64,000 nt of DNA, from contig OZ287694.1 in NCBI GenBank assembly GCA_965649825.1, positions 2,430,902 through 2,494,901 on the forward strand, in the 5' to 3' direction. The notes below the pieces were generated by a model. The model searched no databases. It saw only the letters and a list, made by a program, of their open reading frames with translations, and had not been told where the DNA came from. A program made the position numbers and the translations under genes. The stretch comes from Penicillus capitatus (taxonomy: Eukaryota; Plantae; Chlorophyta). Positions 3,001-64,000 of the stretch are shown here, in pieces. Positions within the stretch are counted from its first letter, which is position 1. Every line of letters starts with the position of its first letter.

Positions 3001-4533
3001 CCATCGAAAGCCACATTGTCTTCAAAACGCGAAGCAGTTAGGTCCGAATGGCCTTCAGAAAGAGTCAGTCCAGCTCCGTTAGTCAGAAAAATGGCCCCGC
3101 CCACAAATGCAGTGTTGTTCTTGAACACTGTTGTTTTAGCTTCCGGAGCAGCGACGTTGCGGAAAACGACGGCACCCCCTCCCAGCGATGCCCTGTTGTT
3201 AGTGAATTGGCAATCGTTTATTCCACACGATGATTCGATTGGGGCAACGTAGTGGAATGCACCCCCATAAACAGCAGAGTTATTGTCAAAGGTAGACTTT
3301 TCGATGTCCAGCTTCGATGTAATCTCAGAAAAAGCTGCAAAAATAGCCCCTCCCATTTGCAAGTCCGATTCGTCCATGGTGTTCTGGGGCGGTTCGACAC
3401 AGTTACCCTCGAAGTTAGAGTTCCGAACAGTGATCTTCTGATTGTCACTGAAGTGGATGGCGCCTCCTGCTGGAACGGCATGGTTTGATTTGAATGTGCA
3501 GTTTTCAATATCAACTTCAGCGTAATCTGCGACATAGATGGCTCCACCGGAAGGCGAAGGTAAAGGAAAACGCAAGTAAGGATTGGCCTCCAACGGACTG
3601 CCACCGGTCAGTGTCAGACCAGATTGATCACGTCCGCCTCGCAGCACACTGTTTCCCTCAAATGTCGAATCCACAATCGTGATCTGGGACGTCTGCAGCT
3701 CTGCTTCGGCCTCTCTGGGCTGCTGGTTGACAAGGATGGCGCCTCCGGTACTTGATGCCACGTTCGCGATGAAAGAAGAGTTCTCGACGCGCAGAGAGTG
3801 TCCGTGAAAGGAGATGGCTCCACCCCCGATTCCAGTATTTCTCTGGAAACGGCAGCCGAGTATCTGAGCGTGAACCTCAGCCTCAGCATGAAATCCGCCG
3901 CCAGCGCTGAGTTCATCTGATTCGACGTTGTCAATGAAGTCCACATTTGTTAGTGTGACGTCCAGTCTCTGCGGAGGACGAGATTGACATTCTGGATCGA
4001 ACGGATCATCGCAAACCGCTGTCTTGTCGAGAACATGGACTGCAGTCTTCGTGCAATTTCGCAAGATCAAGTTTTCGACTTCGATTCCATTCGCACTACA
4101 TTCCCAAACGTCACATCGCGAATGCTGAAAGCATCAGTGAACGCACTGTATCATGAAGCCTTCTTCGTCTTTGGCGCACGTCAAACTCGGCCGGACGTTA
4201 GGGTCCCCGCGGAACGTCAGACGCGGAGTGTTGACTTCGATGCCGGACGGCAGCTGTATGTCCTCGGTGACGACGAAGACGGCATTCCGCCGGGCATTTG
4301 CGACCAACTTGTTGAACTGGTTTGCGTTTTGACTTGTGATGATGATTTCTCTTCCACCGCGCTGCTGCAGCTGTCGCGTCTTCGTCGCTGCTCGACAAAA
4401 AACTCGATTTTATGTTGTTTCTTTCTCGGATCCTTAAATGGATCGTACCAGTTTTCTCAGCTGGGACAGCACGTCCTTTCGCAAACAAAACCAAAGCCAC
4501 AGCAATGTACAAAAGATACGCTGTCTTCGACAT
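1..4533 (-). CDS. Secreted/membrane protein with Chlamydia Pmp-like (GGA[IVL]...FxxN) beta-helix repeats, a Cys-rich region and a multi-pass TM C-terminus; 3' end runs off the window
   Basis: ATG at 4533 gives signal-peptide-like MSKTAYLLYIAVALVLFAKGRA. Short GT-AG introns join ORFs 2718-4070 and 736-2601, which carry many GGAI/GGAF/GGAV and FxxN motifs, CESC..CADCPDNARC and LGYWHSS. Frame stays open to base 1 (YWTQDTNIEC, LGIPGIVFFLCGVPLY). Confidence 0.8.
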
Positions 4534-7769: not shown

Positions 7770-8897
7770 TCAAACGGAATCTCCGAAACTTCTGCCCAGC
7801 TCTTCGTTAATTGCAGCTCGCATCTCTTCGTAACTGCCGTGTCCTGTGACCGGCTGCATCATGGCACGCCACTTTGCATCCATCTTCTGATGCATCTCCT
7901 CGGAGAGCAGTCTATTCCCATCTCCCAGCCTCCCATTGCGAACTCTGCCTTCGTGCGTATGGACACCGTAATAGCGCGGAAGGCCCAGCGCCTCGTTCCT
8001 GGCGATCTTGATCTGATGCGAATCGAACTTGTGCTTGTGCTTCTTCATGAAGTCGAAGGACGCCTAAGAACTGTCTATCGAACAACAGGTAGAAACATCG
8101 ACGGAGAAATGCTTTGCCTGTTCCTCCACGAGCTTCAGCAGCTTGGGATCGTCTGCTCCCACGTTCAGAAACTGAGCGACCAGGCGGATGCATTGCGTCA
8201 GATCCGCCTTCATGTCCTCATAGTGCAGCCACAAGACGTCTGCGTCTTTGCGGCGAGGATACCACGAAACTGGAAAACAAACACAATCAGTAAGTGACTC
8301 GAGTACCATCCATCCCTTACCCATATGCTGCATCTGCTGAGCGTTGGCCATAGGCATGTTCGGCAGCTCTTGCATGACCATCCATTCGACGAATTCATTA
8401 ATATCTATGTCGCTTTCCTCAAACAGCCAGTTGTGAAAGTGGAAGTAATAGGACACAATAGAGTCCTTCGGATTTCTGCAAAGCAGTCGACGGTGCGTAC
8501 GAATCAACAGCAAGAGGCAGACCCACCTGACCACAACGATGTGCTTGCCAAACCCCTTGATGGACATCTCGTAAGGGAAGTGCGTCTTGAAGAGACGGGG
8601 CGGCTCGAATGGCTGAGACGACTCCAGTTCGCGTTCGTGCTCAAACTCGTAATAGAACTCGATGAATGGAATGACGGAGTCCATTTCGTCGAAGTTCATG
8701 TCCCCTCCGGAGCGAAGTCCGTGCATAATCTGCTGCATCCAAGCCGTCCCTGACTTCGGTCCCGTCGCCAAGAGAACGTCATCAGGACTCGGCTGGAAAC
8801 GCAACGCCTTTTCGAGGCACTCAGGGGTGTACGCCAAAGAAAGTCGTCGAAGGAATTTCCAAACGCACGGAGGAGGTTCTGCTCCCGAAACATTCAT
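7770..8897 (-). CDS. Cytosolic-type (SULT family) sulfotransferase, copy 1; 4 exons
   Basis: PAPS loop ATGPKSGTAW, RLFKTH, RNPKDSIVSYY, LWLHYEDMK, C-terminal RVRNG; three short introns. Confidence 0.9.
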
Positions 8898-16451: not shown

Positions 16452-17203
16452 CGGGATCAGAAGAGAAACGATGTCACCTACCAGCCACCGTTCAGAAAAG
16501 CACGAGAGAAAAACCGAAAGCAAGATAGAGAATGTTCTCACGGATACGTATGGCAATAAGACGGGTGGAATAGAGATCTGATCGATTCTCCAGGAATAAC
16601 ACTTGTTGGATGACAGCTGCTTAGGAGCTTCCCCAGGAGAGGATGATGCGACTTTACAGCATTGCACTGGAGGACGATGCTTGCCATAACATCACACAAG
16701 CATGCATGAACAAAGGGCACTTCCTGACGCTTTTAGAGGACATGATCTTGTGGATCATTCGAGAAATGAAAACGCGATGGGCGAAGAATGAAACTGTCTG
16801 CTTATGGACAACATACAACACCATCCAACAGCCATTCCTAGCAAGATTATTTATCCTTAAGATCGTTGCTGGCCGGTTTTAGAGAATGAGATCCGCTATC
16901 GATAGGATATGGGTATGCAGCGAGACGTTAACGTGCCCTTGATGTCGACAGCGACGGGGCCAGTCCAACAAGCTATGACACGTGCATGCTTCGGTTGGAG
17001 CTGGGCGAATGTTTTTGATCCACTCCATCCAAAGATGCGCGTACGGTCCGGCGGCGGATACGCAGCAGCGCGGTCTGACATTGTAGCGATTCTCCTGCTT
17101 CCTCCGCCAACCGTCACTTAATTAAGCGGCTCAGTTTGACCGCTGTTCTATTTCTATTCGCGTTTGTCTTTGCCTTCGTCGTTTTGGACTTCATTCTCAC
17201 GAC

Positions 17204-18425
17204 ATGTCGTCGTTGTGCGGCACTGATTGCGCTTCATGTGGTTGTCTCGAAGACAAGAACGACAAGCGCGTGGTCGCCATTCCCCAGCCACCGCAATTGT
17301 CTGGCGAACAAGACGACTGCCCCATCGCTGTCCGTCGTTATTTAGAACGGATAAACGGGTTGAGCACAGAAGAATGCATGGAGAGAGGATTGAGTTTCCA
17401 TCCCAAAGCGGACGATGTTCTCCTGACAACGGGTTCCAAGTGCGGAACGGCATGGACGCAACAAATAGTGCACGGTCTTCGGTCTGGCGGAGACATGGAT
17501 TTCGACGACGTCGACGCCATTATTCCATTCCTGGAATACTACTGCGATCAAGACGATCAAGCAGAACTGGAATGCACCCAACCATACGCACCGCCACGAC
17601 TCTTCAAGACGCATATTACCTACGATGCGACCCCGCAAGGATTCGGCAAATATATCTTCGTGACTAGGTGCGTTTCGCATCAGGTGCTTTCGCCAGGGAG
17701 CTAAAGTGATGAGGTGCTTTACAGGGATCCTAAGGACGCGGTTGTTTCCTTTTATTATTTTCATTGCGATTGGCTGTTCGAGGAAGATACCATCTCTTTG
17801 GACAGCTTTGTGGAATGGATGGTCATTCGTGACAATGTGCCCTACTCATCTTTGGCCAACGCTACTCAACTTCAGCACATGAGTAAAGCAAAATACCCAT
17901 CACTATCGGCTCTTCACTTGTGGCCTGCAGTGTCGTGGTTCCCCTACCGCAAAGACGCAAATGTCTTGTGGCTGCACTACGAAGACATGAAGGAGGACTT
18001 GGCCTACTGCATCCGTCTCATTGCCGAGTTCCTCGATATCGCCGCCGACAATCCAAAACTGCAGAAGATCGTGGAGCAGCAGGTGATGCACTCTCTCTGA
18101 TATCTAACTCCTCTCTCTATGCCTTGTGTAGTCCACATTCGATTTTATGAAGAACCACAGGTCCAAGTTCGATGCTCACCGCATCAAGGCTGCCAGGAAC
18201 GAAGCCATGGGTCTGCCGCGCGACAGCGGAATGAAAGACAATAATGGCAGGGTCCGAAAGGGTCAGACGAAAGAGGGGATCAAGCTTCTCTCTGAAGACA
18301 TGAACCAGAAGATGGACGCCAAGTGGAAAAGCTTTGTCGAGCCCGTCGTCGGCTACAGCAGCTACGCAGAGATGCGCAGAGCCGTTAATAAAGAGCTCGG
18401 GAGAACCGTCGGTATGGACTGCTGA
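17204..18425 (+). CDS. SULT-family sulfotransferase, copy 2; 4 exons
   Basis: TTGSKCGTAW, RLFKTH, RDPKDAVVSFY, LWLHYEDMK, RVRKGQ. Confidence 0.9.
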
Positions 18426-18431: not shown

Positions 18432-19448
18432 AAAGATATTCTTTCCTTTTCTGCATCTGTTGCCGGAGTGATTTCATCCACCGAGCAGAGAACCACACGA
18501 TCCATCGAGCTGCTCTCTTTCGCAGGCAGCGGTGATCTTCAACGCGTAGAAAGTGTTCTTTTGCCGACAAAAGTCTCACGACGTCCTCTTTCCGTTAACA
18601 ATCTTAGCTTCAACTGCTCAAGGATGATCTATGACACTTCGTAGCGTTTAAGGAGATTGATGATGTGCATGATGCGTGCATGGGTCGGGTCGGGCGTCGT
18701 GACGGAGTCAATGGATACGGTTTGTGATACGATAGAGCGTCCCTTCCGTTGTGAAGAAGATCTGTACGCTTTCGATTGCATGCGTCGTATCTCCTCGCCG
18801 TTCGTCATCGACACCTCGGCTGTGTGGACAACTCGCCGACGTCTCGAATTCGCACTGCACGACGGTTCTTCGATCCGTCCCCTTCAATTCGCAGTTCCTT
18901 GACTCTCAGAAATCACCTCCGTTTCGCGCTTTGTTTATTGGCATGGAAGACGAAGGGGCGAACCCATGTGCTGTGCGCCGGTTTGATCTCTTCACGTGCT
19001 GCCTCGAGCAATGACTGGTCGTAGATTCAGTTTCCCGACGGAGACGAGGATTCGAGAGTATTTCGACGCCAGAGGCTCGAGCTACCAAGGTAAGCGTCAT
19101 GGCAGTATCCTTGACGCACTTGACTCGATCTCTATTTTTAGCTGCTCTGCAGCTGCTGCAGGCATCGCCACTCGCAAAGAGGCATAAGAAAAAGGACGGG
19201 AGCTCCTACGTCGAATGCAGAGCCCAGTGGTCTGTCTGTAACAGAAAATTCAAGATACACTATCTAAAGTGACATGACAGGGGTGATTGAACATTGCATA
19301 ACGAGAGTGTGTTGTCTACAGGCTGTGGTTTCTCGTAAAGATGGCGATGCGTTGCGAGCTGTGGTCATGGGAGAAGCTTGCGAGAGATTCGTGGGACGCG
19401 TGCCCGAACATCGAAATCCATCAACGAAATCTGAGACGCCACTTTGAG

Positions 19449-20974: not shown

Positions 20975-21461
20975 CAGTATCGCCCCATCGTCTTATGTCT
21001 TGCACGAATAATGCGCCTGAGCATTCGATCCAGTGACGGCACGATTGTAAGAATGCCCAAGACGGGTAACAGCAGCTGTATTTGGAGCCCAACTGCATCC
21101 GTCACGCGGCACCATACCGGATCGACACGCAATGCATGAAGAGTCGTTGGCAGGCCTGACGGATCTCACTCATGCCGAGCTGTAGAGGCAGGACCTGTCG
21201 TGAGAGAGGGAGTTGCTATGGGTTTGTGCATTGTCTGCAGCGATTCTCACGGTCGTCGTCTGTCGTGGTTTCTTAATGGAGGTCGACGGTGAAGTCTCTA
21301 GCCGTACGCCAACAGACGTCGCTTTCGTCGGTTAAATCTCTGCCTTTGCCCAATCGCCTCGATGAGCGAACGTAGACGGAAGTCTACGACATCGGTGGTT
21401 TCATTCACCGCGTTGTCACGGACCATAAACATCTTTCGCGTCATTCGCAGCACACAAGACG

Positions 21462-22589
21462 ATGTCTACGCCCGACAACGGGGAGTGTTCGCTGGGTCTT
21501 CTGAAATTCTTTGAACGTTCCCGTGGACTGCTCAATCGCGAGGCGTTGATGAAGGGACTGCGATTTCAACCTCGGCCCAGCGATGTCCTGTTGACGACGG
21601 GGCCCAAGAGCGGCACCGTCTGGGTGCAGCACATTCTGCACGGGCTCCGTTCTGGAGGGGACGTCGATTTCGACGAGATCGACACAGTCTTTCCATTTGT
21701 CGAGCTGTACTATGGATACAACGACCAAGGCGACCTGGATGCCGCACAGCCCTTTGAGCCGCCACGATTCTTCAGAATGCATGCCGATTACGAACAGACA
21801 CCCGGATTCAACAAACGCATCGTCGTAACAAGGTCATCCATCCCCCTTCATCCTCGCTCCCCTCATCCTGTCTTCTCAGAGATCCTAAGGATGTGATCGT
21901 ATCGGCCTATTTCTTTTTCAAGGAATGGCTGTTGGACGAGGAGGTCTCGGTGGATGAGTTCGCGGAGTGGATGTTTGTGAAGGAAGGCGTCACACTTACG
22001 CCCTTTGCCAATGCTCCAAATCTGAAACATTTGAGTGAGACGCCGCCACAGATATGTGTCGACAGTTATGTATTGCCGGCTTCTGTAGTCTCTTGGTTTC
22101 CACACCGTGGCGATGACAACGTCTTGTGGCTGCACTACGAGGATTTGAAGGAAGACCTAACGGGCTGCATACATCTCATCGCGAAGTTTCTCGATCTGGG
22201 GGCGAATGACGCGGAGCTGCTGAAGCGTGTGGAGCAGCAGGTAACATTCCGCCCATCGGTCACCGTTTCCATACGTTGTGTGTATGTGCATCCAGGCTTC
22301 GTTGGACTTCATGAAAAAGCATCATACCAAGTTTGATTCGCATCATGTTAAGATCGCCTTGAATGAAGCTCTCGGTGTGCCACGGGATCGTGGAATCGGC
22401 AACTGTAAGGGAAGAGTTCGGAGTGGACAGACGAAGGAGAGTGCGAAGTTTCTGTCAAAAGAAACGCGTGAGAAGATGGATGCAAAGTGGAAGACACTGG
22501 TCGAGCCTGTCGTGGGATACGGCAGCTATGAGGAGATGCGAAGGGCTGTCAATGCAGAACTCGGAAGACGTGTCGGCGAGGAGAGCTAG
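21462..22589 (+). CDS. SULT-family sulfotransferase, copy 3; 4 exons
   Basis: TTGPKSGTVW, RFFRMH, RDPKDVIVSAY, LWLHYEDLK, RVRSGQ. Confidence 0.9.
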
Positions 22590-23085
22590 CTGTCTTCCTA
22601 TCTGCCTTACCCTGATCGATTATTTCGCGTTGTCTGATGACTATGATGGTTTTGCGCATACCATATCGCAGTTGGATGTCTGGTGTTTCTGTGACTGTCA
22701 TGGAATGTGTGCGTTTCTTGTTTCGTGCTTGAAGTGTTTGAACATTTGTGGGAAGAGTAGATTCCTGCCAAACGTACGGCGGTCCGACGGGCGTATCCAG
22801 CGGCTGAAATGACGGTTTGGCGTTTTCGCATGGCCCTGTCTCGTTGAGAGGCATCTCCGTACTGACCTCGCGAAACGCTTCGGATAATCTCTTTCTGGAC
22901 GGCGCTCTTCCTGTTTCTTACCTGTCCGTTCTTCGCTTCTTTAACCGACTCTTCTTTGCATTCTCTGACGTGCTTTCGTTGGACGTCTTGCGAAGCAAAC
23001 AGACTTGCACCTACAAATTGGCATATATAGACTAGACCTGCAGAATCTTACGTAATCTGCAATCTCCGCCGTTTTATTCGCGAAG

Positions 23086-24246
23086 ATGCTGCCTCTTTTA
23101 ACCAACGTGACCACAGATGTCTTTTCCCCCGTAACATGCTCGTCCGCACTTCGAGCGTATTTTCAGCGTACAGGTGGATTGAGTACTAAGGAAGGCGTGG
23201 AAAAGGGACTGGCGTTTACACCCCGGGGTGACGATGTTCTCTTGTCGGTCGGCTCGAAATCGGGTATGACCTGGACGCAACAAATTGTCCACGGTCTTCG
23301 TTCTGGTGGAAACATGGACTTTGAAGACTTGGATACCATCATACCCTTTCTCGAATACTTTTACGCCCACAACACGGAGAACGATTTGGGCCAACACGCT
23401 CAACCGTATGCTCCACCCCGTCTGTTCAAAACGCAGGTTCGTCACGACTGGACACCGAAAGGATTCGGCAAGCAAATTGTCGTGACGCGGTAAGCGCATC
23501 GTCTTCGGGCGTCGTCGTTGCCGAACGTGTTTGTTTCACAGGGATCCCAAAGATTCCATCGTGTCGTTGTACTTCTTTCATCGCGATTGGCTCTTCGACG
23601 GAGAGGAGATTTCGTTGGACGACTTCGTCGAATGGGCAGTTATTCAAGAAGACGTTCAAGATGCGCCATACGCCAACGCCTATCACTTGAAACACCTGAG
23701 TCCGTACCGTTTTGATCTATGATTCCGCTTACTTAGCATCGCCTGCTTTTCAGTCTCGTGGTTTCCCTACCGCAAAGACGCGAATGTCTTGTGGCTGCAC
23801 TACGAAGACATGAAGGAAGACTTGGCCTACTGCATCCGTCTCATTGCCGAGTTCCTCGATATTGCCGCCGACAATCCAAAACTGCAGAAGATCGTGGAGC
23901 AGCAGGTGATGCACTCTCTTTGATATCTAACTCCTCTCTATGCCTTGTGCAGGCCACATTCGATTTCATGAAGAAGCATAAGTCCAAGTTCGATGCGCAT
24001 CGCATCAAGGCTGCCAGGAATGAAGCCATGGGTCTGCCGCGCGACAGCGGAATCAATGGCAACGTTGGAAGGATCCGAAAGGGTCAGACGAAAGAGGGGA
24101 TCAAGCTTCTTTCTGAGAACATGAACCAGAAGATGGACGCCAAGTGGAAGAGCTTTGTCCAGCCCGTCGTCGGCTACAGCAGCTACGCAGAGATGCGCAG
24201 AGCCGTTAATAAAGAGCTCGGGAGAACCGTCGGCATAGACTGCTGA
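23086..24246 (+). CDS. SULT-family sulfotransferase, copy 4 (catalytic His replaced by Gln); 4 exons
   Basis: SVGSKSGMTW, RLFKTQ, RDPKDSIVSLY, LWLHYEDMK, RIRKGQ. Confidence 0.88.
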
Positions 24247-26932: not shown

Positions 26933-28231
<1,299 letters not shown>

Positions 28232-29179
28232 TGTTCGCGTCTTTCTTGTTCCACGTCTGCGAAAGATCTGATTCGAAGCGGACGGGATTTTCGGGAACCT
28301 GATGAAAGGACAACTGTACGACGCCATGTGTAGAAGCACGCCTTTCGGACAGACGGACGTTGACAGACGCGTTCAATCGGTTTGTACATAATTCCATATT
28401 TACATGGCTTTTGCGTTCACATGTGCCATAAGCAAACAAGAAAAAAGCATTCAATGAAGGTTCACAACATAATTAGCACGGCTGAACTAATCACTTATGT
28501 GAGATAATATTGCGCGAAATCGCGACTTCGGCCATTTGGGATCGGACTTTCTTCGACGACCATACTGATGGCCGATCAGTAACGGAAAACTTCCAGTTTA
28601 CAGGGAGGATGTGCCGACATGCTGTGCATTCCAGAGAATGGTTTCTTCTCTCATTTCTATCCTCTCGACGTTTTCTTCGTATGCTACGTGGTGCTCCACG
28701 TCCTTCATGTTTTCCAGTCTTCTGATGCACATAATGGAAGCACCTTGAACACGGACGCGATATCTCTTCGACCCAGATAACTCCGAGAAACGCCTACCGT
28801 AGCAAAGTAATCGTGACGGTATGTTGTCTTGAGGTCTTGCCGATCTATCTGGCGCCGACCATGACCCTTCCCGCATTAGCGATGGCCGAAAAATTCGAAA
28901 CCGGGTGATCGCGGTTCCGGCCTTTGCACCACATGCTTGATGCGTGGTCGGTAGTCGTCCTCGACGAGTACCGCCGAACCGAGAATATACGAAAAATGCT
29001 TCCGCGTCTATCTTCGAGGTTCAAAGCTCCGAAACCATTTTGTCACGCGAAAGTTATGTATGCAAACGGACGTACGTAAAACAGACAGCGGTCTTTCAAA
29101 GATGATCTGTCTTGTACAAACCCCTGTTCTTTCACCCCCAATTTTCATCACGCCGTGCTTCATTCACGTCATGCTGACG

Positions 29180-49958: not shown

Positions 49959-52207
49959 TTACACGTCGTCTACATTTTGAAAGGGTCTTCGCTCCAAGCT
50001 CGTCTGCACAAGAGAGGTCGAGAAATCGACTTCAATGAACTAGATAACATCTTGTCCATCGCGAACGCGACAAATCCTCGTGCGCACCTCGCTTGCTGGC
50101 GATGTACTCCTCGACTCTGATATGCTTTGACGCAGTTGGTGATTTGTTTCGCGAAGGTCTTCGAGCTCGTGGCGAGCGACGTCGACGGATACTGTTGTTT
50201 CCTCGTTACCCATAGGACGAATGATGATAATACTCCCGGACGTCAAACCACTCTACGCGACAGCCGTCCAGAATCGGACGCTTTTGGTCATCGGTGCTCA
50301 CTTTCGCGACCGTCTGCTGATACGCTCGAAGACGTGTCACCTGCTTCGAAGGATGTATAGCAAAGAAACAGCAATCCATCATCTCCAGTCGCTCATCGAG
50401 GCCACAGAGATCGGTAAAGCAGAGAACGTGAAGCTTAGCGCTTTTGCGAGTAAAGACGCTACCGATGTACTGCAGGCTCTTCTCGGCGGGGTCCAGGATC
50501 ATGCCGAAGACGAGGATAGAAGTTCGAGGCCATCTCGGAAAAGATGCGTCGATGTCTTCTCTGAAGTAAAACGTGAGCGTCGGATGCTCGTCCTCGCTCG
50601 CGTTATGGCTCAGCTCACCGAGACAGAGATTCAGATCTTCCAGGTCATCCAAGCAGACAGCGCAAGAAAAAACGCCGTTTCTTCCAGCGGGACGCAACCA
50701 TATGGTGCACTGGGCCGCACGGGATTCGGCATCCTGTTCAATCTACGCGAGACACTGTCCACGACGAAGCGAAACGAACGGTGAAGTGCTGACCATATCG
50801 CTGACTGTGTCCAGTGACTCGGTCGCTGGCAGGATGTACATCTTGCTCTTCGGAATCTTGAACATCGAGGACAGGCCGTCTTTCTTTACCTGCTCTCGGA
50901 TGCGGCTGTCCGTTATGACTTCAATAGAAACCCTCGCCTCTTCGAACAGTCTTATCTTGCCGATGAAATCGGGAGGCGGTCTCGAAATCAAAATTCGCAG
51001 TCCAAATGTTAGCCAACCGTTGCGCAAGAACCCTTTGTCGTTTTCGTCGAAGCTCCCGCGAAATGAAGCCGTCGGAATCTTAATCTGCCAGCCTCTTCCC
51101 TGTTTACCTACACACGACCAATCTCTATGATGCACGAAGATAGAGGCGAGCGCGCGTTCGGAAACTAGTCGCCGCCACTTTCTTCGCGCTCTCTATCGGT
51201 TCTTACTTGCAGCGACGCTTTTCTCCGGAGAATCCCGGTTGAACATAACGACGCGGAAGTCCACCGTCAAATCGTCCAAGTCCGGAGGGATATGCAGGAA
51301 GAACGTCTGACACCAGCCCTGGCGCTCGACCATCCACAGACCCCTGAGTCAGTCGCCTGCAATGACCCCAGTAGGAAGAAGGGACGCACCACTTCCGTTG
51401 TCCGAACACGAACGTCTTCGTCCAGTACTCTCCGCCGTCATCGCCGCCGCCAGTCCCCAAGATCGGCATGACGGACCACTGCATACGGCCGGACATAAAA
51501 ACGCACATAGGAGAGAGCGTCGTCACTTTGCCGCACGCTTCTAAACCCCGTTCGAAGATGCTGAACTCCTCGCGGCCGCTGTTCTCGAACTGCATATGGA
51601 ATTTGAGAACTGCAAACTCATCTCGGACGACTCCCAAACGGCTCTTCTGAATCTTCCCACCATACCGTCTTCCACGTTGGAGGCGGACATGCTTGCCTTC
51701 GAACACTCGACAGATCCACAGAACCCTGTATGGATCCGAGAGACGACACCTGCTACAGCTGATGGATCGTTAATCCACCAATAGCATCGAGACGACGGAG
51801 GCGTCCTTTTGTCATGAAAGCTGAAGTAAGCCTCCAGCTCGTCGTCTGTCGCGGATGTGATGTAACCCGTCCTGTACGTCACATCACATGGAGGTTGTCA
51901 GAGGGGTTGTGGTGGCGAGCAGCTGATCAGCGAACCATGTCAGACCGAGAAACGAAATGTTTTCTGTCTCAAGCATCTCCCCTGGAGAGAGCAAGAGTTC
52001 GTTCGGCACTTCTAACTGCACAGGGGAGTCAAGGGAAGGGATAGAGTGCAAATCATGTGGCATACCAGAACGAGAGCCTTCTCTCCACCGAATTCCTCCA
52101 CTTTGAATTCATACTCTGTGTATTTCCAAGTCCCGGAGCCTCCGCGTCACGATTTTATTCGTATGGAGATGGAACGGCGTTGGATGCTTACCTGAAGTCG
52201 TCCGCAT
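49959..52207 (-). CDS. MATH-MATH-UBL protein derived from USP7/UBP12 without catalytic domain (paralogue A); multi-exon
   Basis: Micro-exon ATGCGGACGACTTCAG|GT. MATH motifs (LETENISFLGLTW; YWTKTFVFGQRKW; GFLRNGWLTFGLRI), EEARVSIEVITDSRIREQV and SILVFGMILDPAEKSLQYIGSVF (USP7 UBL1-2-like). No USP Cys or His box. Confidence 0.72.
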
Positions 52208-53163: not shown

Positions 53164-56100
53164 ATGCAAGTCGAAGGTACGTCGTCGCCATTGCCAGCAC
53201 TGCCACGTCCAATGCCTGTCGAGTACAGAGGGAAATGGATTATCTAACGAAATCGAATATTCTTACACACTGAGCAAACACGAATGGTACGCCACTTACG
53301 AGGTGACCCGCCGTGTCCCTTCTGTCACGCTGAGGCTGCCATGTGCAGTTTCGCGTCCATTATTCCTTGCTTGATGACAACGGTGGCAAAGTGGAGACGA
53401 AGACCTTCGAAGTCGACGGCCAGAAATGGTGAGCAGAGGCGATTGGCTGTATCCTCTGAATCTCGCTGTTACATGTTTGGAGGTCGGTGGTCTTGTCATG
53501 CACAAAGAATGAAGAGTTGATCGCGGGACTCGTCCCACGGGACAGGTCGCGACGGAAAGTCTCCTTCACTTTTACACTTGTTAACCATGACGACACGGAC
53601 AAAGACGTCACGCGAGGTGTGTGCTACGTCACATCGGCAAGGAATGGATTGGAGTCCGTTCTTTAATGTGTCAGTGGCTTATGGAGACTTCAGGATTCCT
53701 TACAGGGGAATCAAAGCGGCTCCAATCCCCAAGTCACTCGTCTTCCATCAAGATCCACCCTCAAGCTTTCTCAGAGATAACTTCCTGACGATGCGACTGG
53801 AAATGAGAGTGAGGGGACGAGAGAGTGAACAATGGAAGGTCGTTGTCGATGAAACGGCGACCACCGTTTGCAACGTAAATCCTATTCTCACTCTTTTCGG
53901 AAGAGTGATTCTTGGTGATGCAGTGGAGAATTCGATATCTGCGGGAGTTGAGTCCACGCGTCGTCCAGTCGAGTGTATTCGCTGTGGGAAATTGCAGAAT
54001 GTAGGGTCCCTCACTCATCACCTCCATCCACTCATCTCACTCTTCTGTTGTTCTCAGGAGAATGATTCTCATTCATGACGTATCACCCGTCGCTTCTGGC
54101 GGCATGAGTGTGCTTCTCGAAAGTGTGTCCCATCCCTATTGTTGCTTCACTGGAGAATTGCTCATTACGAATCACCGTTCTCGCGAAGACAATCTCGTGA
54201 CGAGTCTCGATCCCTGCACTAAGTGATGTGACTGACTGTGACGTTTCTCTGTGGCAAGGGATCTCGGAGTATTTCGATGAGGCTTCCGGAAGAAGCAGTG
54301 TTAAAGTACTGGACTGCTGGGAGTCATTGGACGAGGCATCTGGTTTTGCAAACGACGGCTGGATGAGCCTGTCGATCAAACTCACTCAACGGAATCCAAA
54401 GAAACTGGCACAGAACGTGCTGCACATGTGGAAGCAGACCACTTCGGAACGGACGTCTAAGAAAGACGCGGCATCGTTGTGGACGACAAAAGGTATTGGT
54501 ACCACGCTCCTGGCTCTCTCGTACCATGCGCGTTGCAGAGGGCACAGGATGCAGCAGTGGTATTCCTTATGCCTATACTCTCAACACAACTGAATGGTTT
54601 GCCTCCTATTCGGTGAGCTTATGGATATGTCATCGTCCATGAGGCACCACACGTGTGGTTCTGTCTGTGGCAGTGGTGCGTACATCGTTCCCTTCTGGAC
54701 AGAAGTGGTGTAGGAGTAATCACGAAGACATTCTATGCGAATGGCCGAAAGTGGTGCGCACCAAGATGCACATCTGCTTTATGTGTGCAGGGCTATCGTT
54801 CAGGCAGGTCGGTGTGAGAAAGGCCGAAGATGAAAGCATAGAAGCTTGCCTGGTTTCAAAGGAGAGCACGCCCGTAACCGCTCATGTCGGCGTTGCTCTT
54901 GCCAACTTCCGCAACGATGTGCACTTTATCCATCCAAGTAGGGGACAAGCCCTTCCGTGCACCTTGGATGGTACCGAACGACGGTTTTGGTTGTGGCACA
55001 GGCGATTGCGCCATCTTTGAATCTCCCGGGCGTCCTTGGGTGCACAAGATCCTTTTCTCCGATCGGATAAAGGAACCGGGATCTAACCTGATGAAAGGAG
55101 GGTTCTTCATTGTCTTCATGGACATGAGACTCAAAGTGCCAAAGAACGAGATCTGCGATATTTCCATCACAAGAAACGTCGCGGCCTGTCAGGTGCTTAC
55201 GGCACAGATGTGCTGTGGGGAACGATGGCATGTTTGTCTTGTAGTGGAGGCTGAAGCCCCTTTCCGAAACGAAACTCAATTTTGTGTCCACTCCACGATT
55301 CATCATCGGCGACATCGAAATGTCCGCGACGTTGCCGATATCGCAGTACAGGACTAATGGGTGTTTCTTATGGCGTTCACAGGGAGATTGGCTTGTATCA
55401 TTGTGAAGTCCGGGGTCACTCATGGGTGTTGCTTCACAATCTCAGCAACACACCCATTCGCGCAAAATGCGAAGCCCGTGCCAAAAATCGTGACCACTCA
55501 AACAACCGAGTGACAGGCATGGACGATGATGTCACTCTTCTTTGATCCAACTGATCATGGTATCTCTGTCGCAGATGTTGTCGGATCACTCTTTCCGGAT
55601 GATTGGAAAGAAACGCGGGTTTTCCTCACTACTGCCGAGCTGGAGAGAGAAGACATGGGATTCGTGAAGGATGGCTGGATGGATCTTTTGATCAGGGTTG
55701 CTGTACTTGGCACCGAAGGCACAAATCCGGTCACCACATCTCACGTTGCGGACCCCTACGTCATCCGTCCTCAACGTCGAGTGCTTGATCCTGAACCGGG
55801 AACGCTGATGCGTGTGAGAGGTATGTTTGTCCGACAGTTACCTTCGCTGTCCTACAGTGGAGGTCTGGACCAGAGGGCGCCGGTTCATGCAAAGACATAC
55901 AATACAGCTACACGCTCAACAAACACAAGTACTATGCCGTTTACGAGGTCCGTTACTTCAAATCCCCGATCGATATCATTTCATTGCCGTGTGCAGTGTC
56001 GCGTGCACCGTTCTCTATTGAACAGCACAGCCAAAGTGATATGGACGGCGCCTTTTGAGTTGGACTACCGACAATGGTGCATTCCAGAACGCCTTATCAA

Positions 56101-57842
56101 CCATCGCCCCTACTGATGTCATGCATTCTGTGCTTCAGGCGCATCGGAATGCGACGCGAAGTGAACGGCCACTTGACAGCCTGTGTCAAGAATGTGGATG
56201 TGACGCGACTGACGGCGCACATCTGTTTGACTCTTGTGAATCACCGGGATGACAAGAAGAGCCGATGCAAAGGTAGAGAAATCTGCCCCTCGTCCAATCG
56301 ATGATAGAGTTGTCCCCAGGAGCACTTGCTTCGTTCTTCCCGGCGGCCTTTAACGACACGCATCACTTTCAGCTCTGTCATGCCGAAGATGCAAAGGATG
56401 TCTCTTTGGGCTGCTTGAAAGATGATTTCTTTTTGGTGCGAGCGGAGATTCGTCTCAAACTGCCGAACAATGAGCACTGGACAGTTTCTGTTAAGCGAAA
56501 GACGGCAACATGCGAAGTACGCAGAGCAGTCGATAGCCTCGTCCGGGAAAGTGATGCGTGTCATGTGTCGGGTTCGCCAGTGGAGGCTGAGAGATGTGGT
56601 GGCACTGTGTCCACAGTTGCTGACCTCTCAAACATTCCGCATCGGCACAACGGCATGGTGCGAATGGCCACGTCTTGCATTCTGGCTCTCGGTATAAGAT
56701 CTTGTTCTTCTGCAGGAGCTTGGTGCTCTACCAAAAAGGAACGGAATCGTGCTCCGAGGATTTTGCATTGTGCATCTACAACGAAAAAGCCCGTGCCCTT
56801 CGAACAAGATGTGCGTTGAGGCTTGTCAGCAACGAATCTCCGAAGAAGGACAAAGTGAAAGGCAAGTGCTAAATGTATAACTCGACAGGAGAGCTGATCT
56901 TTGCTGTCATACAGTGCTTAAAGAGACCATCAAGGCGAAAGAAAACCGACTGCTCTGCGATCTTTTCAAGAGCGAAGAGCTGTCGGAGAAGTCCTGTCAG
57001 TTTGTGGAGGACGGCTGGATCACTCTGGTCGCGGAGATCACGCTTTTGGATGAGGAGATGGTTCCGCAGTGCACCTCCTGCAAAGACAGACCGCTGTGCT
57101 CCGTGCGTCACGGCAACACGTACATCGTCTGCATTGTTCTGTCGCCGCTGGAGGCGTTTCGGTTGCGCAGGAAGCATCTCTGTTACTGCCTGGACTGTGC
57201 CAAGAAGGCCAGGGAAGCGATTGATGACCATCAGGAACTCAAGTGCCCAGTGTGTCAAGAAGTGGTGGAGAGGGTGGCGATGGAACACGGACCGTACCTT
57301 CCACGTTGTCCGACATGCGAGATCAACCCTACATGTGCCGTTCAGCACAAAAACACGTACGATTTCATGTCCTTCTGTCATCCAGCATCTGCTGTCCTCG
57401 CAGGACACACCTGTGCTACTGCACGCCGTGTGGAGAGAAGCTCGCCCAGAGGTTGAGGAGCGGAAGTGCCCAACACTGTCCTTTCTGTATGGAGCCAGTG
57501 GAAGGCGTCATCATGAATGCCGCTCCGTGGAAGACGGCGGCGGAGAGAGAGAAAATCGCGCAGTGCCACTACTGCAAAGCAGACGTTCCCACATGTGCCG
57601 CGTTCCGCAGAGACCCACACGGAAAGCGATTCAGAGCCTCGTTGGGCACCCAATGCTCTGCCGGCAAACATACATGCCTCTGCAGGGAATGCGCCCGTAG
57701 ACAGCTTCATGAAATTCTCACAGAGAACCAGAAGATCGAGCGTCCAGCCCGTGCCCAACCGGCAGGCCAGATTCTTATCATCGATGCACCCGAAGAGCTC
57801 ATGACACGTGGACGTCGAAGATCTCAGAGTGATGCACAATAA
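53164..57842 (+). CDS. Multi-MATH protein (about 5 repeats) with two complete and one degenerate MDM2-type RING at the C-terminus (paralogue D); multi-exon
   Basis: Micro-exon ATGCAAGTCGAAG|GT. Repeated MATH ends (FLRDNFLTMRLEM, GFANDGWMSLSI, GFVKDGWMDLLI, CLKDDFFLVRAEI, FVEDGWITLVAEI). RINGs CTSC..HGNTKHLCYCLDCA..CPVC and CPTC..HKNTTHLCYCTPCG..CPFC. Central exons only partly resolved. Confidence 0.72.
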
Positions 57843-58518: not shown

Positions 58519-60915
58519 CTAGAAGATCTTGGTAACCAGCCCGGTGTAGGGTTCCAAGCAAACTGGACATTGGTGGAACTCTTCTGCATACAATCTCCGA
58601 GCGCATTCCTCGCACGCACAGATGTGGACCCTACACATACACACCAACTAACCGCGGAACATACGGAGAGCAGATCTGAAGTGAACGTTTCCCCGTGGTA
58701 GAAGCCGGATGTCTGCGGGTTCTCTTGACAGACGACGCAGAGAATGTCTTGTTTAATGGACTGAAAACAATGACATAGATCGTCAACGTATGGTGCAATA
58801 GGAGGATCATCACGAGCTTACGTCGTCAAGAGGTGCACTGACGATCTTTGGAGCGTGATGGGTATGTCCGTTCAGATTCTGAAGCTCTTGACAAAATATG
58901 GCAGCATTGATGGCCTCATCTTCTTTCAGTGGTCGAACGATGATCACACTTCCTGATATTAGTCCACTCTGCAGTCCACAGTATATCTCCTGATCGATAT
59001 CCTACAGTATTTAGACGCACTTCTTTCACAGTTTTCTGAAAGGAGCGTATCTGCACAGCGCAGTTCTCAGACTGCACAACAAAGAAAGAGCATTCCATAT
59101 CGTGCACTGTACTGCAGAGATCGTTCATATCAGTAAAGCAGACGGAATAGAGGTTGGAGTCCTCGAGTGTCAGGATACTCCCAAGTACTCCAGCTTACCG
59201 ACCCGGGGATCCAATAACATGCAAAACAGAAGGACAGAATGTCGGCAACGCCTTGTGGGTAGACCGCCTGATTGCACATAGAAAACCAAGACGTTATATA
59301 TGTCGAAGTCCACCAGCCACGACAGCTCGCAGAAACGGAAATCAAACTCTTCCACTAACGCATCCACGCAAAGAGCCTTGAAGATTTCATCTCCCTTTGC
59401 ACAGAGAAGCCAGACGGTTGATTGGGATGGATCCCAGCTTGCATCTCTCTGAATCTGCAGAGAAGACAATTGCTCCATCCATGATCTGGTCTCCGGAGGA
59501 TACCAGTTGTTTCATCGTACTCAGTGGCCAGAACGGCGCGGCACGGTAAGCGGGAGATGTCTCTGTGCTAAAGACATCAATCTTCGCTGTTGTCGCCACA
59601 TGTTGTCCGATCGTTTTATCGGTGAGAACTTCGATCCCACAGGGTCGTTCAGAAGGCGAAGAGAAGTCTCCCATGAATCTCATTGGGAGATTGCCGACGA
59701 GAATCATTCGCAGTGCAAATTTTAACTAAGGTTTATGCTCAGCATGCTCTTCTTCCGTTTCTTTACTGGGAGGAGGTTGTACAAACGAAAACTGAATGCC
59801 CTGTCCTTCTGGATTCTGATTTCCTACAAGCATCTCGCCATACTTAACGAACCAATCGTGGCCGATGTGTTTCGCCGCCTCCGATGTGTATCATACATTT
59901 CCGTTCCATCGTTTGGATCTCAATCGTTCCGTAACTCGAGCATGGTACGCACTTTGAATATTGCTCTGTTCTAGAAACGATGGATTGATGAGGAGCGCCT
60001 GGCACTCGATCGCAATGGGGTCCATAGTTGACAGATCCACAACGTCAAGTATCATGTTGCCACAATCTGCATGATGCAAATGAAGTCCCCTGACCCCATT
60101 CACAATTGTCACGCACGATGACAAGGGAAAGAAACGAACGGACCATTCTCTTCCATAGGAGATAAATCGATCGGTCAAGAAGACTTTGATGCGTGCATGT
60201 CGTTTCACTCTCCACTGCAACAACTCAAATCTCCAAAGCGGCGCTCTCGTACGGTTATACCACGCAACACGTATCAATGACTCCTCGGTAAACCGTGAGT
60301 TCTTCATCCCATGACTGAAATCGCAGACGGGATTCGATCGTAATGAATCCATCGTTTGCTGCAGGACTTGGAGGACAAATCCCTCCGTAACAACCACCCT
60401 GTACAAGTGGAGACGAAGCACCTGTGGAGAAGAGCGCCAGAATGGTGATGGTCATCGAGGAGGCGAAACCTGGAATGCAGACAGGTCGGACAAATTTCCA
60501 ACAGCATCGCAGCGATTGACAACGGCTAACAGGACTGCACAGACGCCAGACTAGCTCGATACTTTCATCCCTTTTGGTCGTCACACATGCCTTCCTGCAC
60601 GTCACATCTTTGCAATGGAGTGAGAACGAAGACGAACCAGTCATAGCCGGAAAATGCTATCTCTTCCGTTTCGAACGCAACGTCGGGCGTTTCCAGCAGA
60701 TCTTCATGCACCAAGACCTAGAATGTCTACGGCGAAGGGTGAGCCATGGATGGTTGAACGTACGGTGAGGCTCATTGTCTCCCATGATATTCGTTTTCCC
60801 TGTACCGCGTATTCAATGCCTCTCCATTCGCCGAGTTCTGCACAAAAGAGGTTAAGCGCAAGTCTGAGATCGCTCTGTTCTGTTCCGTTCACTTACGGAA
60901 CACATCAGACGACAT
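58519..60915 (-). CDS. MATH-MATH-UBL-(MDM2-type RING) protein (paralogue B); carries a frameshift and stops that may be spliced out, so possibly a pseudogene
   Basis: Homologous exons to A and C (FETEEIAFSGYDW, GIEVLTDKTIGQHV, SVLLFCMLLDPR), ending CVVCQENPQTSGFYHGETVHICACEECARRLYAEEFHQCPVCLEPYTGLVTKIF. One base is missing in the C-run at 59180-59182. Confidence 0.68.
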
Positions 60916-61222: not shown

Positions 61223-63435
61223 ATGCGGTCGTCTTTCGGTAAGCGATCGATTACCATACCCCTGTCGCGTTCACACAGCGTGACAATCCAACAGGACATA
61301 GGGTTTCAAACGGGATAGAGTACGAAATCAAAGTGAACGAGTATCATGGACAGAAAGGCCTCATTCTGGTATGCTAACTACTCTTACCGTCCTCGATTTC
61401 GTCTCCGTTGTACTGACCCAATAACGGTACAGCTGGAAGTGCCGAAGGATCTCTTGCAGTTTCCCGAGAAAATCATGGAGACGGAAAAGATCTTGTTGTT
61501 GGGTTATGCCTGGTACGGTTGGTCTTACCTGAGCCGTCCTTGGCATTCCGATGTGACACATAGGACGGCTTGTGTGACCACGGCGAACGATGACACTCTG
61601 GAGGCGTATTTCTCTGCGCACAGTTCCGTGAGCACGCCGCCTCGACATTGTTCCTGGTGGATTAACGATCCTTCGACCGTTGCAAGTCATGTCACCTTGA
61701 TGTGACGTCTTATGAGTGTGAAAATGCATGGTGAAGGCAAGCAGTCTCTTCTAGAACAGGGAAGTCTTTTTGGAGGGAAGATTCAGAAAAGCCGTCTTCA
61801 GATCGGCAGCAACGCATCGGCGATCCTCACTTTCCATTTGGAACTGCAGGACCAGCCTCGTGACGAATTCTCCATCCGCACCGACGGCTCCGTCGCATAC
61901 TGCAAGGCGTCGTTGTCCCCCGACGCCCATATCCATTCCAGACGTCTTGTCTTCTGCAGTGGGCAGTGAGGCCGATCCCGGGAGAAGAAAACGGAGAGTA
62001 CTGGACGAAGACTTTCGAATTTGGTCAGCGGGACTGGTGCGTCGCGTTCCTTGCCCTTTAGAGATCGCTTTCGCATGTGTGGATGCTGAAGGGGTCTGTG
62101 GATGGTGGAACGTCAGGGAGCATGTCAGACGTTCTTTCTGCATCTTCCTTCAGAACTGGACAACACCTTCGTCGACTGTCGAGTCATTCTGTTCAATCGT
62201 ACCTTTCCAGATAAAAGCGTCGCCGCTCGTAAGCATGTGTTCGATGCCGTGGACCGCCGAGAGGTGACGGAGTGGGAATGCTGTCTAGGAAAGCAAGGAA
62301 GAGGATGGCTGCTCAAGATACCGACCGGCGATTTTCGTCTGAGCTTCTCTGACAGTCAGGAAGGGTTCTTACATGATGGTTGGTTACTGTTTGGACTGCG
62401 GATTGCCATTTTAGACAAGCAATCAGCATGCTTCCCCCATCCTCGGGCATTTGAACGGGCGATGGTTTCCGTCGAAGTGATCACAGACAGGCGCATCCGT
62501 GAGCATGTGGAGAACAGAGGGCTCTCCAGAGTCTTCCGCATTCCGCGAAGCAAAACGTACATCCTGCCGGTGCACGCACCGCTCGAGACTGTTCGAGAAA
62601 AGGCACGCCGTCAAGTAATGTCTCTCTTTCAGACGGGGTGTGCTGGCACAGATCGAGCGAGATGCTGGGCCACATGCAGTGCCGTCGACGACATGGCTGT
62701 GTCCTTCCCAGTCCAACGGCATCTTTGCCAGAGTCGTCTGTCTATGCGATCTCGAGGAATTGAAGCCATGTCTTGGCGAATTGGCGAGTCATGACGAGAA
62801 TCGGGATGATCATCCAACGCTGACGTTCTTCTTCCGAGAGTGCATAAGCGTTACCCTGATGCGATGGCCTCGTCAATCAGTTCTCCTTTTTGCTATGCTC
62901 CTGGATCCCATCGAGCAAAATGTCGAGTACCTTGGCAGTGTGTTCGCCCAGAGGAACACAAAACTCCACGTTCTGTGCTTTACGGATCTCTGTGGCCTTG
63001 ACCGTAAGCTAGAGAACATGGAGTGTACGTTCTTTATATGGGGCGAGACGGAGCAGCTCATGCCAATTCGGACATATCAGCAGACGGTGGAGAAAGTGCG
63101 TCGTCATGCCGTCGATGCTCATGCTGCATGGGCCGCGCCTTAGAGTGGGATGACGACCGGAAGTATCGTGATCGTCCGTCCGATGAACGATGGAGAAACG
63201 GTGACTTCGTCAAGCCTCGCTTTGGAACTCCAGAGCGTGTCTGGAGATCATCCCTTCCGTCATCGTATGACCGAGACGTCGAGCTCGACGCCAACAAATC
63301 AAACCGTACATTCATGTCTCGGCGATTCTCTCCGTTAACATGTGGACGGTGCAGTTCGTTCGTATGGAGAATTCAGTCGTTGACGGACAAGGCAGTGGGA
63401 CATTATCGAGTATCTTCCATGAAGACGAGGAGTAA
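61223..63435 (+). CDS. MATH-MATH-UBL protein derived from USP7/UBP12 without catalytic domain (paralogue C); multi-exon, one GC-AG intron
   Basis: Micro-exon ATGCGGTCGTCTTTCG|GT. METEKILLLGYAW, YWTKTFEFGQRDW, GFLHDGWLLFGLRI, FERAMVSVEVITDRRIREHV, TWLCPSQSNG, SVLLFAMLLDPIEQNVEYLGSVF. Confidence 0.75.
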
Positions 63436-64000
63436 TCTGTCGTCTACTGTTTGTTGCGAGAACTGTGGTGATGATGAGATGGGTCGATCGAAGCAATAAG
63501 AGAGATACGATCATTCAAGATGGCGCTCTCGCTGGCAGCGGAATGCATTTATTTTTCATTAGTTGGAGCCTCTGTTGGCTCTTCACATTCTCAAAGTTAT
63601 GAAGGTTCATACTTCGAAGGGCATTTGATGGGACGCTTCATTCATTCTAGAGGTATTGGGATCTCACAGATTTCTCTCACGATTGCATCTTCGATATAAG
63701 AACACACCGGGGGACGCATTGACACATCTGGTTGTCAACATTCGACATTGCGTGAAAGACGCGTTCTTTCCTTGTACAGAAGCAACACTTGTGTTGGTGG
63801 GTTCGTTTGACGTGCCTCTTGTTGTGCCAATGAACTCGCTTCGCACGGTCATCGTAGAATCCGTTAGTCTGTTTGCAACATCCGAAAGCCGTTCCATACA
63901 GTAATAATGACTCTATGGCAACAGCAACTCGATGCCTATGACTTATATGGCTCTCCAAACTCCTTCCAGCAGCTCGAGGCGCTGTAAAAACAATCTCTAA

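Follow-up and report, generated by a model that had tools for sequence, protein, structure and literature searches.

An MDM2-type RING joined to a putative USP7-type UBL region in a gene family of a non-animal eukaryote, with a probably inactivated copy on contig OZ287694.1

Can an MDM2-type RING and a USP7-like scaffold meet in a single polypeptide chain outside animals, and what would such a chain tell about the partnership of USP7 and MDM2? The question is raised by gene B, one of three related genes (A, B and C) in a stretch of 64,000 nucleotides (nt) of contig OZ287694.1, deposited under Penicillus capitatus (the whole stretch analysed, hereafter the window). A sequence-only reading of this DNA had described a C-terminal RING of MDM2 type downstream of MATH-MATH-ubiquitin-like (UBL) exons, and had proposed a Rosetta-stone fusion of the two animal partners. 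A survey of MDM evolution recovered MDM genes exclusively from animals, starting with Placozoa (PMC5543598). With its G+C content of about 51% and its very short GT..AG introns, the window is eukaryotic nuclear DNA; it comes from the 214,315-bp contig ctg339926 of the ENA assembly ERZ25074695, and relatives of gene B were found in this assembly and in ERZ26696514 by tblastn with the RING, followed by splice modelling. On balance, we lean towards the view that gene B belongs to a lineage-specific family, whose intact members would consist of N-terminal repeats, a divergent USP7-type UBL1-2 pair and a RING of the MDM subclass, the copy in the window being probably dead.

The MDM2-type RING of gene B and its relatives

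The model of gene B was built from the conservation between paralogues and the enumeration of in-frame GT..AG pairs. It comprises 11 exons on the minus strand, from an ATG at 60915 to a stop at 58519, separated by ten introns of 43 to 129 nt, in which every donor is GT and every acceptor CAG or TAG:

60897..60915, minus strand: exon 1, with the ATG at 60915 (MSSDVF); a short first exon is also present in paralogues A and C
60764..60837, minus strand: exon 2, between introns GTAAGT..GTGCAG (59 nt) and GTACGT..TTCTAG (46 nt)
60638..60717, minus strand: exon 3, first beta-rich repeat (..EEIAFSGYDW), with a junction kept in A, C and the relatives on L002 and L003
60264..60594, minus strand: exon 4, remainder of the first N-terminal repeat, with the same junction (..CC-W..) as the L003 gene
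60144..60214, minus strand: exon 5, in which the second N-terminal repeat begins
59953..60089, minus strand: exon 6, with a 129-nt intron homologous to introns of 104-115 nt in the L002 and L003 genes
59504..59823, minus strand: exon 7, end of the second repeat and start of the UBL1-like region (..IEVLTDKTIGQHV..), aligned with A, C and the public proteins P0001 and P0002
59021..59454, minus strand: exon 8, USP7-HUBL-like UBL region (IQRDASW..KTVKE)
58822..58968, minus strand: exon 9, last UBL strand (SGLISGSVIIVRP) and linker (..APKIVSAPLDD)
58687..58760, minus strand: exon 10 (RING exon a), first half of the RING (CVVC..HGET), encoding SIKQDILCVVCQENPQTSGFYHGET
58631..58686, minus strand: intron within the RING, 56 nt, GTTCAC..GTGTAG, phase 2, in the Thr codon after HG.T
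58519..58630, minus strand: exon 11 (RING exon b), second half of the RING (H.C.C..C...CPVC) and a 12-residue tail ending in KIF; 58630-58522 encodes VHICACEECARRLYAEEFHQCPVCLEPYTGLVTKIF, and the stop lies at 58521-58519

The peptide quoted in the sequence-only reading (CVVC..CPVC....VTKIF) is indeed encoded on the minus strand, by 58760-58687 and 58630-58522, and positions 58761-58790 are the last 30 bases (3' end) of the 61-nt intron preceding RING exon a. A 52-nt intron (GTGCGT..CTGCAG) that is kept in A and C precedes exon 9. The junction between exon 9 and RING exon a is in phase 0 on both sides, with GTAAGC at the donor and TTTCAG at the acceptor. Since the open frame around RING exon a lacks any Met ahead of the first Cys, the RING cannot be the beginning of a separate gene.

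What kind of RING is encoded there? The 61-residue peptide matches PF13920 (zf-C3HC4_3) in Pfam with an expectation value (E) of 5e-10, scoring 39.4 bits alone and 34.6 bits within the whole model, for a cut-off of 27. When it was compared to PDB sequences with phmmer, the best 17 matches were MDM2 (E 3.9e-9 and up) and MDM4 (1.8e-7), the next family being MUL1 at 5e-3, and IAP was not among the listed matches. The zinc ligands are spaced as C-x2-C-x10-H-x4-H-x3-C-x2-C-x11-C-x2-C, a Cys2His2Cys4 arrangement in which all eight, HG.T.H included, align with those of MDM2; the C-terminal aromatic residue, reported earlier with HG.T.H as a hallmark of MDM2/MDM4, is present too. This Cys2His2Cys4 pattern has been described as unique to MDM proteins, and served as an inclusion criterion in a survey of MDM evolution (PMC5543598). 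The ligands are kept in the four B-type RINGs compared residue by residue; among three further B-type relatives, known from translated matches, Cys has changed to Phe twice, at a non-ligand position. After the last Cys comes a tail of 12 residues, closed by I or V and then F or Y, in all seven genes; the residue directly after this Cys is Leu in B, Arg in MDM2 and Lys in MDM4. Given the Pfam score, the PDB ranking and the ligand pattern, the label of MDM2-type RING is, at the level of sequence, well founded. It concerns the RING only: in Pfam searches of the full B and C models, no SWIB domain was matched at E<=1 and no zf-RanBP zinc finger was found, and the region upstream of the RING is occupied by the UBL, with no central acidic region.

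The UBL-to-RING arrangement recurs in six further genes (two on L002, and one each on L003, L008, L006 and L009), of which the L003 gene is the closest relative of B, and the L006 and L009 genes come from the window's own assembly. In all six, the last UBL exon is followed by an intron of 51-64 nt, RING exon a, a phase-2 intron of 48-56 nt and RING exon b, and the phase-2 intron falls in the Thr codon after H(G/K/A)ET, at the same position and in the same phase as in B. The peptides across the junction (marked by a hyphen) can be aligned: ..APLDD-SIKQDILCVVC, ..VVVDN-SMNQDALCIVC, ..ATNDN-SVNQNALCIVC and ..QIDVN-FVHPTAVCIVC. Over 55 codons of the RING, comparison of B to the two L002 genes gives proportions of 0.16-0.17 for non-synonymous (pN) and 0.69-0.72 for synonymous differences (pS), and a ratio of non-synonymous to synonymous divergence (dN/dS) of 0.08-0.11, which points to purifying selection on the RING for most of its history. 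Because both the junction and the RING intron recur in six genes, and because dN/dS of the RING is about 0.1, the UBL-RING fusion is to be regarded as real at the family level, and as a conserved family trait.

Two paralogues in the window share the rest of the architecture:

50040..52207, minus strand: paralogue A, a model of 565 amino acids with N-terminal repeats and UBL as in B, without the RING
61223..63338, plus strand: paralogue C, a model of 547 amino acids with N-terminal repeats and UBL as in B, without the RING

Both end shortly beyond the last UBL strand. A tblastn search with the RING detects no match downstream of either, nor downstream of their relatives in L001 and L002, which confirms the earlier observation that the RING is missing from the ends of A and C. 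Cys-rich sequence beyond C (~63330-63500) was considered as a relic of a RING and dropped, as tblastn lends it no support; likewise, an apparently premature TAG before IEQDAES in A proved to be the acceptor of a 51-nt intron. At the site homologous to the B-type intron 6, A and C (window 51206-51100, minus strand, and 62200-62290, plus strand) have a GTAAG donor and a YAG acceptor; this site is open and in frame in C, P0001 and P0002, where it could be either intron or coding sequence, and contains a stop in A. On L002, a third RING-like stretch with an in-frame stop (18687-18773, minus strand; RICACEE*EQDRYDK..CSIC) may be a decayed B-type copy. Beside the family cluster, L001 (16434-21041) and L002 (1-563) hold a large NACHT-HEAT/PDS5-repeat protein and an element of the long interspersed nuclear element (LINE) type (Exo_endo_phos_2 and RVT_1).

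Public proteins for these eukaryotic contigs (P0001-P0003, P0124-P0158) are unspliced open reading frames (ORFs), which read through short in-frame introns and stop at others; these calls leave the family architecture invisible in databases, and the precomputed Pfam fields empty. A word-indexed homologue search with the spliced peptide of the UBL end and RING returned nothing, the public proteins for these contigs being unspliced ORF calls. The family is confined, so far, to two metagenome assemblies, and its combination of repeats, UBL and RING is a new domain architecture of a known kind, that of a predicted RING E3 ligase.

A further RING-bearing locus of the window, gene D (53300-57842, plus strand; one or more genes), has at least five beta-rich repeats like those at the N-termini of A, B and C, and ends in three tandem MDM-type RINGs:

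57067-57282, plus strand: gene D RING1, with the MDM ligand pattern and, after HGNT, the same phase-2 intron as B
57304-57515, plus strand: gene D RING2, with the MDM ligand pattern and the same intron after HKNT
57561-57783, plus strand: gene D RING3, degenerate, without intron and with CPxC replaced by RPAR

The closest PDB matches of RING1 are MDM2 (1.1e-5) and MDM4, and nothing else falls below E 0.5. The MDM-type RING is thus a mobile module of this genome, used in at least two architectures, which weakens the B-type fusion as a specific signal of USP7 and MDM2.

The region upstream of the RING and the state of gene B

Which scaffold is the RING attached to? In A, B and C, the chain begins with two beta-rich repeats of about 130-150 residues each, which the sequence-only reading had taken for MATH domains. 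This assignment found no statistical support. Pfam matches nothing, MATH included, to these repeats, whether they are searched within the full models or, at E<=10, as isolated segments, and hhalign probabilities stay below 1%, both for the family alignment against the MATH domain of USP7 (0.3%, with a USP7 sequence checked to be exact against PDB), and when a profile of 19 family sequences was compared to four aligned MATH/TRAF-C domains (0.4%). The sole local alignment (FFLHLPSEL..VDCRVILFNR with FFLQCNAES..AQAVLKIINY) is not significant, and is probably what the earlier reader saw by eye. Ig-like Foldseek matches of the AlphaFold (AF2) model of P0001, which covers part of the second repeat, were discarded, this model resting on ten alignment rows with a predicted local distance difference test (pLDDT) score of 42.

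The UBL part of the designation fared better, and proved USP7-HUBL-like both by profile and by fold. Besides the RING, the only further Pfam signal in the full-length B and C models is PF12436 (USP7_ICP0_bdg), at 13.7 bits in B and 18.2 bits in C, both below the cut-off of 27 and both over the same part of the profile. Compared to PDB sequences, the family profile retrieves only USP7 UBL entries, at a non-significant E of 1.5 and over the motif ..VLLF..LDP....L.Y.G... An exhaustive HMMER search of a family profile against 1.84 billion representative proteins matched 38 proteins. Of these, 36 belong to the family itself, as short ORF fragments on eukaryotic contigs of environmental origin. The remaining two, P0157 (E 4.7e-5) and P0159 (E 6.3e-4), are both true PF12436 proteins by Pfam, with 31.6 and 210 bits, respectively, and P0159 also contains a TIR domain. 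P0159 is plant-like and, with its two USP7_ICP0_bdg regions and its TIR domain, represents another protease-less use of the USP7 UBL module. An AF2 model of the UBL region of P0131 (an intact relative), computed from a 27-row alignment, reaches pLDDT 74-89 over the second UBL and shows the beta-beta-alpha-beta-beta..beta order of a beta-grasp fold. In a Foldseek search of PDB, its top 22 matches are all USP7 UBL1-2/HUBL (E 3.9e-7 to 1e-5, probability 1.00), followed from 3.6e-3 by the DUSP-UBL domains of USP4, USP15 and USP11, and its template modelling scores (TM-scores) are a modest 0.40-0.45. The upstream region may thus be read as a divergent USP7-type UBL1-2 (HUBL) di-domain, a call with good but not perfect support, because the TM-scores are modest and the alignment held one true PF12436 protein.

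The protease itself is missing from this scaffold: Pfam finds no USP (UCH) catalytic domain in the B or C models, and none of the 38 family matches is longer than 510 amino acids or USP-like. In the gene B model, about 40 residues separate the second UBL from the RING, which leaves no room for UBL3-5 or the C-terminal activating peptide. Of the claimed fusion to a USP7-like scaffold there remains an in-frame splice from the UBL exons, found again in six other genes, to a RING that is the sole MDM2 part, with no USP catalytic domain in the chain. The B-type protein is neither a USP7, for lack of a protease domain, nor an MDM2 orthologue, for lack of the SWIB, acidic and RanBP2 zinc-finger region.

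Is the copy in the window still able to produce such a protein? Once corrected, the gene B model contains exactly two defects, both upstream of the RING:

59726..59728, minus strand: lesion 1, an in-frame TAG at codon 270, placed by codon alignment in the motif ..D(G/D)W-L.(F/L)GLR..
59179..59181, minus strand: lesion 2, a 1-nt deletion (~59180, codon ~436) in or after the Gly codon of the KLEYLG-S motif

The codon alignments took in copies from A, C, L001, L002 and L003, with eight copies for the TAG site and five for the frameshift, and both blocks are contiguous coding sequence in every homologue. At the first site, five homologues, among them A, C, the L003 gene and one L002 gene, read TGG (Trp), and one, the other L002 gene, TGT (Cys). 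At the second, B reads GAG TAC TTG GG- AGT ATC, a -1 frameshift that meets a TGA three codons on, in a block (..(L/V)(E/Q)Y(L/I)G S..) that is otherwise invariant, with GGN-AGY intact in the homologues; the public ORF call for the locus, P0132, ends exactly at this frameshift. Stops and frameshifts seen in the N-terminal part of B had also been considered as damage, and were set aside since splice modelling places them in introns. As the TAG and the deletion lie at sites intact in homologues, and as introns able to rescue them would delete conserved strands, gene B is in our judgement a probable case of recent inactivation, either a pseudogene or a null allele, in which the RING exons have not yet decayed. 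The sequence-only reading depended on the RING exons being translated with the exons upstream; in this copy the TAG and the frameshift block translation from the ATG to the RING, which nearly overturns that reading for this locus, and at the family level the junction is intact in the relatives.

Several observations weigh against this view of the family and of its copy in the window. The lesions could be consensus errors or belong to a minor haplotype, the contig being a 26x metagenome contig; in-frame GT..AG pairs surround both of them (59782-59726, 57 nt, GTACAA..TTAG, and 59202-59162, 41 nt, GTCGGT..CGAG); the RING exons themselves are undamaged; the UBL fold call was drawn from a model of mean pLDDT 63; the N-terminal repeats have no assigned fold; and E3 activity and dimerisation are themselves inferred, for a protein with Leu at the Arg/Lys "linchpin" of active MDM2-type RINGs. 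Could gene B then be functional and yield a full-length repeat-UBL-RING ligase, its lesions being errors of the assembly or of the consensus, or else being spliced out with two additional introns? No damage is seen in the RING exons or at any of the ten ordinary splice sites, the deletion lies within a short G/A run, and dN/dS of the RING is low against relatives. Nevertheless, the TAG results from a substitution, a kind of change that is not typical of long-read errors; rescue by the 41-nt intron would need a GAG acceptor, where all ten real introns have YAG, and would remove the conserved KLEYLGS strand of the UBL; the 57-nt one would delete a segment with a conserved Trp or Cys that is contiguous in every homologue; and low dN/dS over saturated dS reflects a long shared history rather than the recent past. 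A functional gene B is accordingly held to be unlikely, though still worth reckoning with. Far less credible, to the point of being nearly dismissed, is the idea that the RING exons do not belong to B, and form a small gene by themselves or derive, as a stray copy, from the RING module of gene D. In its favour, gene D ends 677 bp away in three RINGs that resemble that of B in type and in intron position, the RING of B being only ~36-40% identical to them. Against it, the RING of B stands on the opposite strand to D, its frame has no ATG, a phase-matched canonical intron connects it to the UBL exon, and the same UBL-to-RING junction is found at six other loci, none of which has a second, D-type RING match.

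If gene B is read, as we prefer, as a probably inactivated member of a family in which the fusion is conserved, does this fusion carry the Rosetta-stone meaning first given to it, namely that USP7-like and MDM2-like modules act jointly on clients other than p53? Such joint action would mirror, or be ancestral to, the USP7-MDM2 partnership of animals. Both modules are present, and specifically USP7-like and MDM2-like, and their fusion is conserved in seven genes. However, the proteolytic domain of USP7 is missing from both B and C by Pfam, and only the RING of MDM2 is represented. In animals, the contact between USP7 and MDM2 involves the MATH domain of the former, which is not detectable here, and a part of the latter outside the RING. 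RINGs readily fuse to many different partners, a recognised source of error in the Rosetta-stone method, so that the logic does not follow. Gene D, for its part, carries three copies of the same type of RING in another protein, one that has no UBL. The absence of both the USP catalytic domain and the SWIB, acidic and zinc-finger region of MDM2 leaves the Rosetta-stone proposal weak, and we consider it very improbable; that two rare and specific module types meet in one chain remains an intriguing coincidence.

Other genes of the window

Other genes of the window are of ordinary nuclear kinds (Nop14, BCD1, eIF2-beta and an RRM protein), and the following were recorded in addition:

8067-8897 (minus strand), ~17130-17700, ~21430-22330 and ~23060-23490 (all plus strand): four sulfotransferase paralogues, one of them checked by Pfam (Sulfotransfer_1, E 2e-28) and the other three read by eye
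739-4133, minus strand: a large protein in which Pfam recognises Chlamydia-PMP (Chlam_PMP) repeats and a right-handed beta-helix (E 5e-21); Cys-rich and membrane-spanning parts, read by eye, come after them
27499-28372, minus strand: a porphobilinogen deaminase gene, whose first ORF starts with a Ser/Thr/Arg-rich extension of ~35 residues without acidic residues
41768-41843, plus strand: tRNA-Arg (CCG), the single Rfam or ARAGORN match in the window

The extension of the porphobilinogen deaminase may serve as an organelle transit peptide, and so hints, weakly, at plastid targeting and at an algal host; a green alga is possible. The window also contains a C-terminal exon of Mot1 without a close named relative, its best named matches being a fish (46% identity) and, along a shorter alignment, the green alga Coccomyxa (53%). 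In a neighbour-joining tree, the window groups with Logan assemblies; when the comparison is confined to shared alignment columns, its identity to animals and its identity to green algae fall in the same range, 51-55%.

Meaning of the fusion and comparison with known systems

How might an intact member of the family work? By the names of the families to which their domains belong, B-type proteins would be RING E3 ubiquitin ligases, in which the C-terminal RING and its conserved aromatic tail would dimerise, and recruit and activate a charged E2, as in MDM2/MDMX and IAPs. In USP7, substrate and regulator peptides dock onto the UBL1-2 pair, which could serve here as a docking or regulatory scaffold, the N-terminal repeats picking the substrates. 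The number of paralogues with and without the RING suggests a rapidly diversifying recognition system.

USP7-type UBL domains are hardly known outside USP7, and yet, by the readings given above, at least seven genes of an uncultured non-animal eukaryote combine such a UBL with an MDM-type RING in a single chain that lacks the protease. The family would thus offer a concrete outgroup, both for the origin of the MDM RING and for the role of the USP7 HUBL once freed from its protease. MDM2 and MDM4, with their unusual Cys2His2Cys4 RING, have been described as an animal invention (PMC5543598). An alternative history would be that this RING predates animals and was wired here to a USP7-derived scaffold without protease, the animal USP7-MDM2 partnership being the split descendant, or the sister, of an ancient single-chain ligase; we give little credence to this scenario, in which the family would be the closest non-animal relative of the catalytic end of MDM2.

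Among known systems, MDM2 and MDM4 are the best PDB matches of the RING of B, by a margin of six orders of magnitude, and share with it about 44% identity over 50 residues, the eight ligands (HG.T.H included) and a CPVC followed by a short tail with an aromatic end. They differ by the SWIB p53-binding domain, the acidic region and the RanBP2 zinc finger, all absent from B, and by their tail, of 13 residues ending in ..YFP instead of 12 ending in ..KIF; in addition, the host of B is not an animal, and its RING is multi-copy and used in at least two architectures. With the HUBL region of USP7 (HAUSP), B shares the motifs ..W....NG..R.., ..LLF....DP....L.Y.G.. and ..G.II...., as well as reciprocal profile matches to true members, at scores below the Pfam cut-off, and it differs from USP7 in lacking the USP catalytic domain, a detectable MATH domain, UBL3-5 and the C-terminal activating peptide.

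MATH-containing E3s and adaptors (the TRAF family, TRIM37, SPOP, SIAH) show the same general logic of a beta-sandwich substrate-recognition module combined with a RING, and are likewise multi-copy with lineage-specific expansions. In TRAF and TRIM37, however, the RING is N-terminal and of another subclass, USP7-type UBLs are absent, and the MATH domain that they possess is unconfirmed in the B family. Another point of comparison, despite UBL and RING types that differ from those of B and bear no sequence relationship to them, is provided by UHRF1 and Parkin (UBL-RBR), in which a ubiquitin-like fold and a zinc-finger ligase domain are likewise carried by one chain, leaving the UBL free for regulation or docking.

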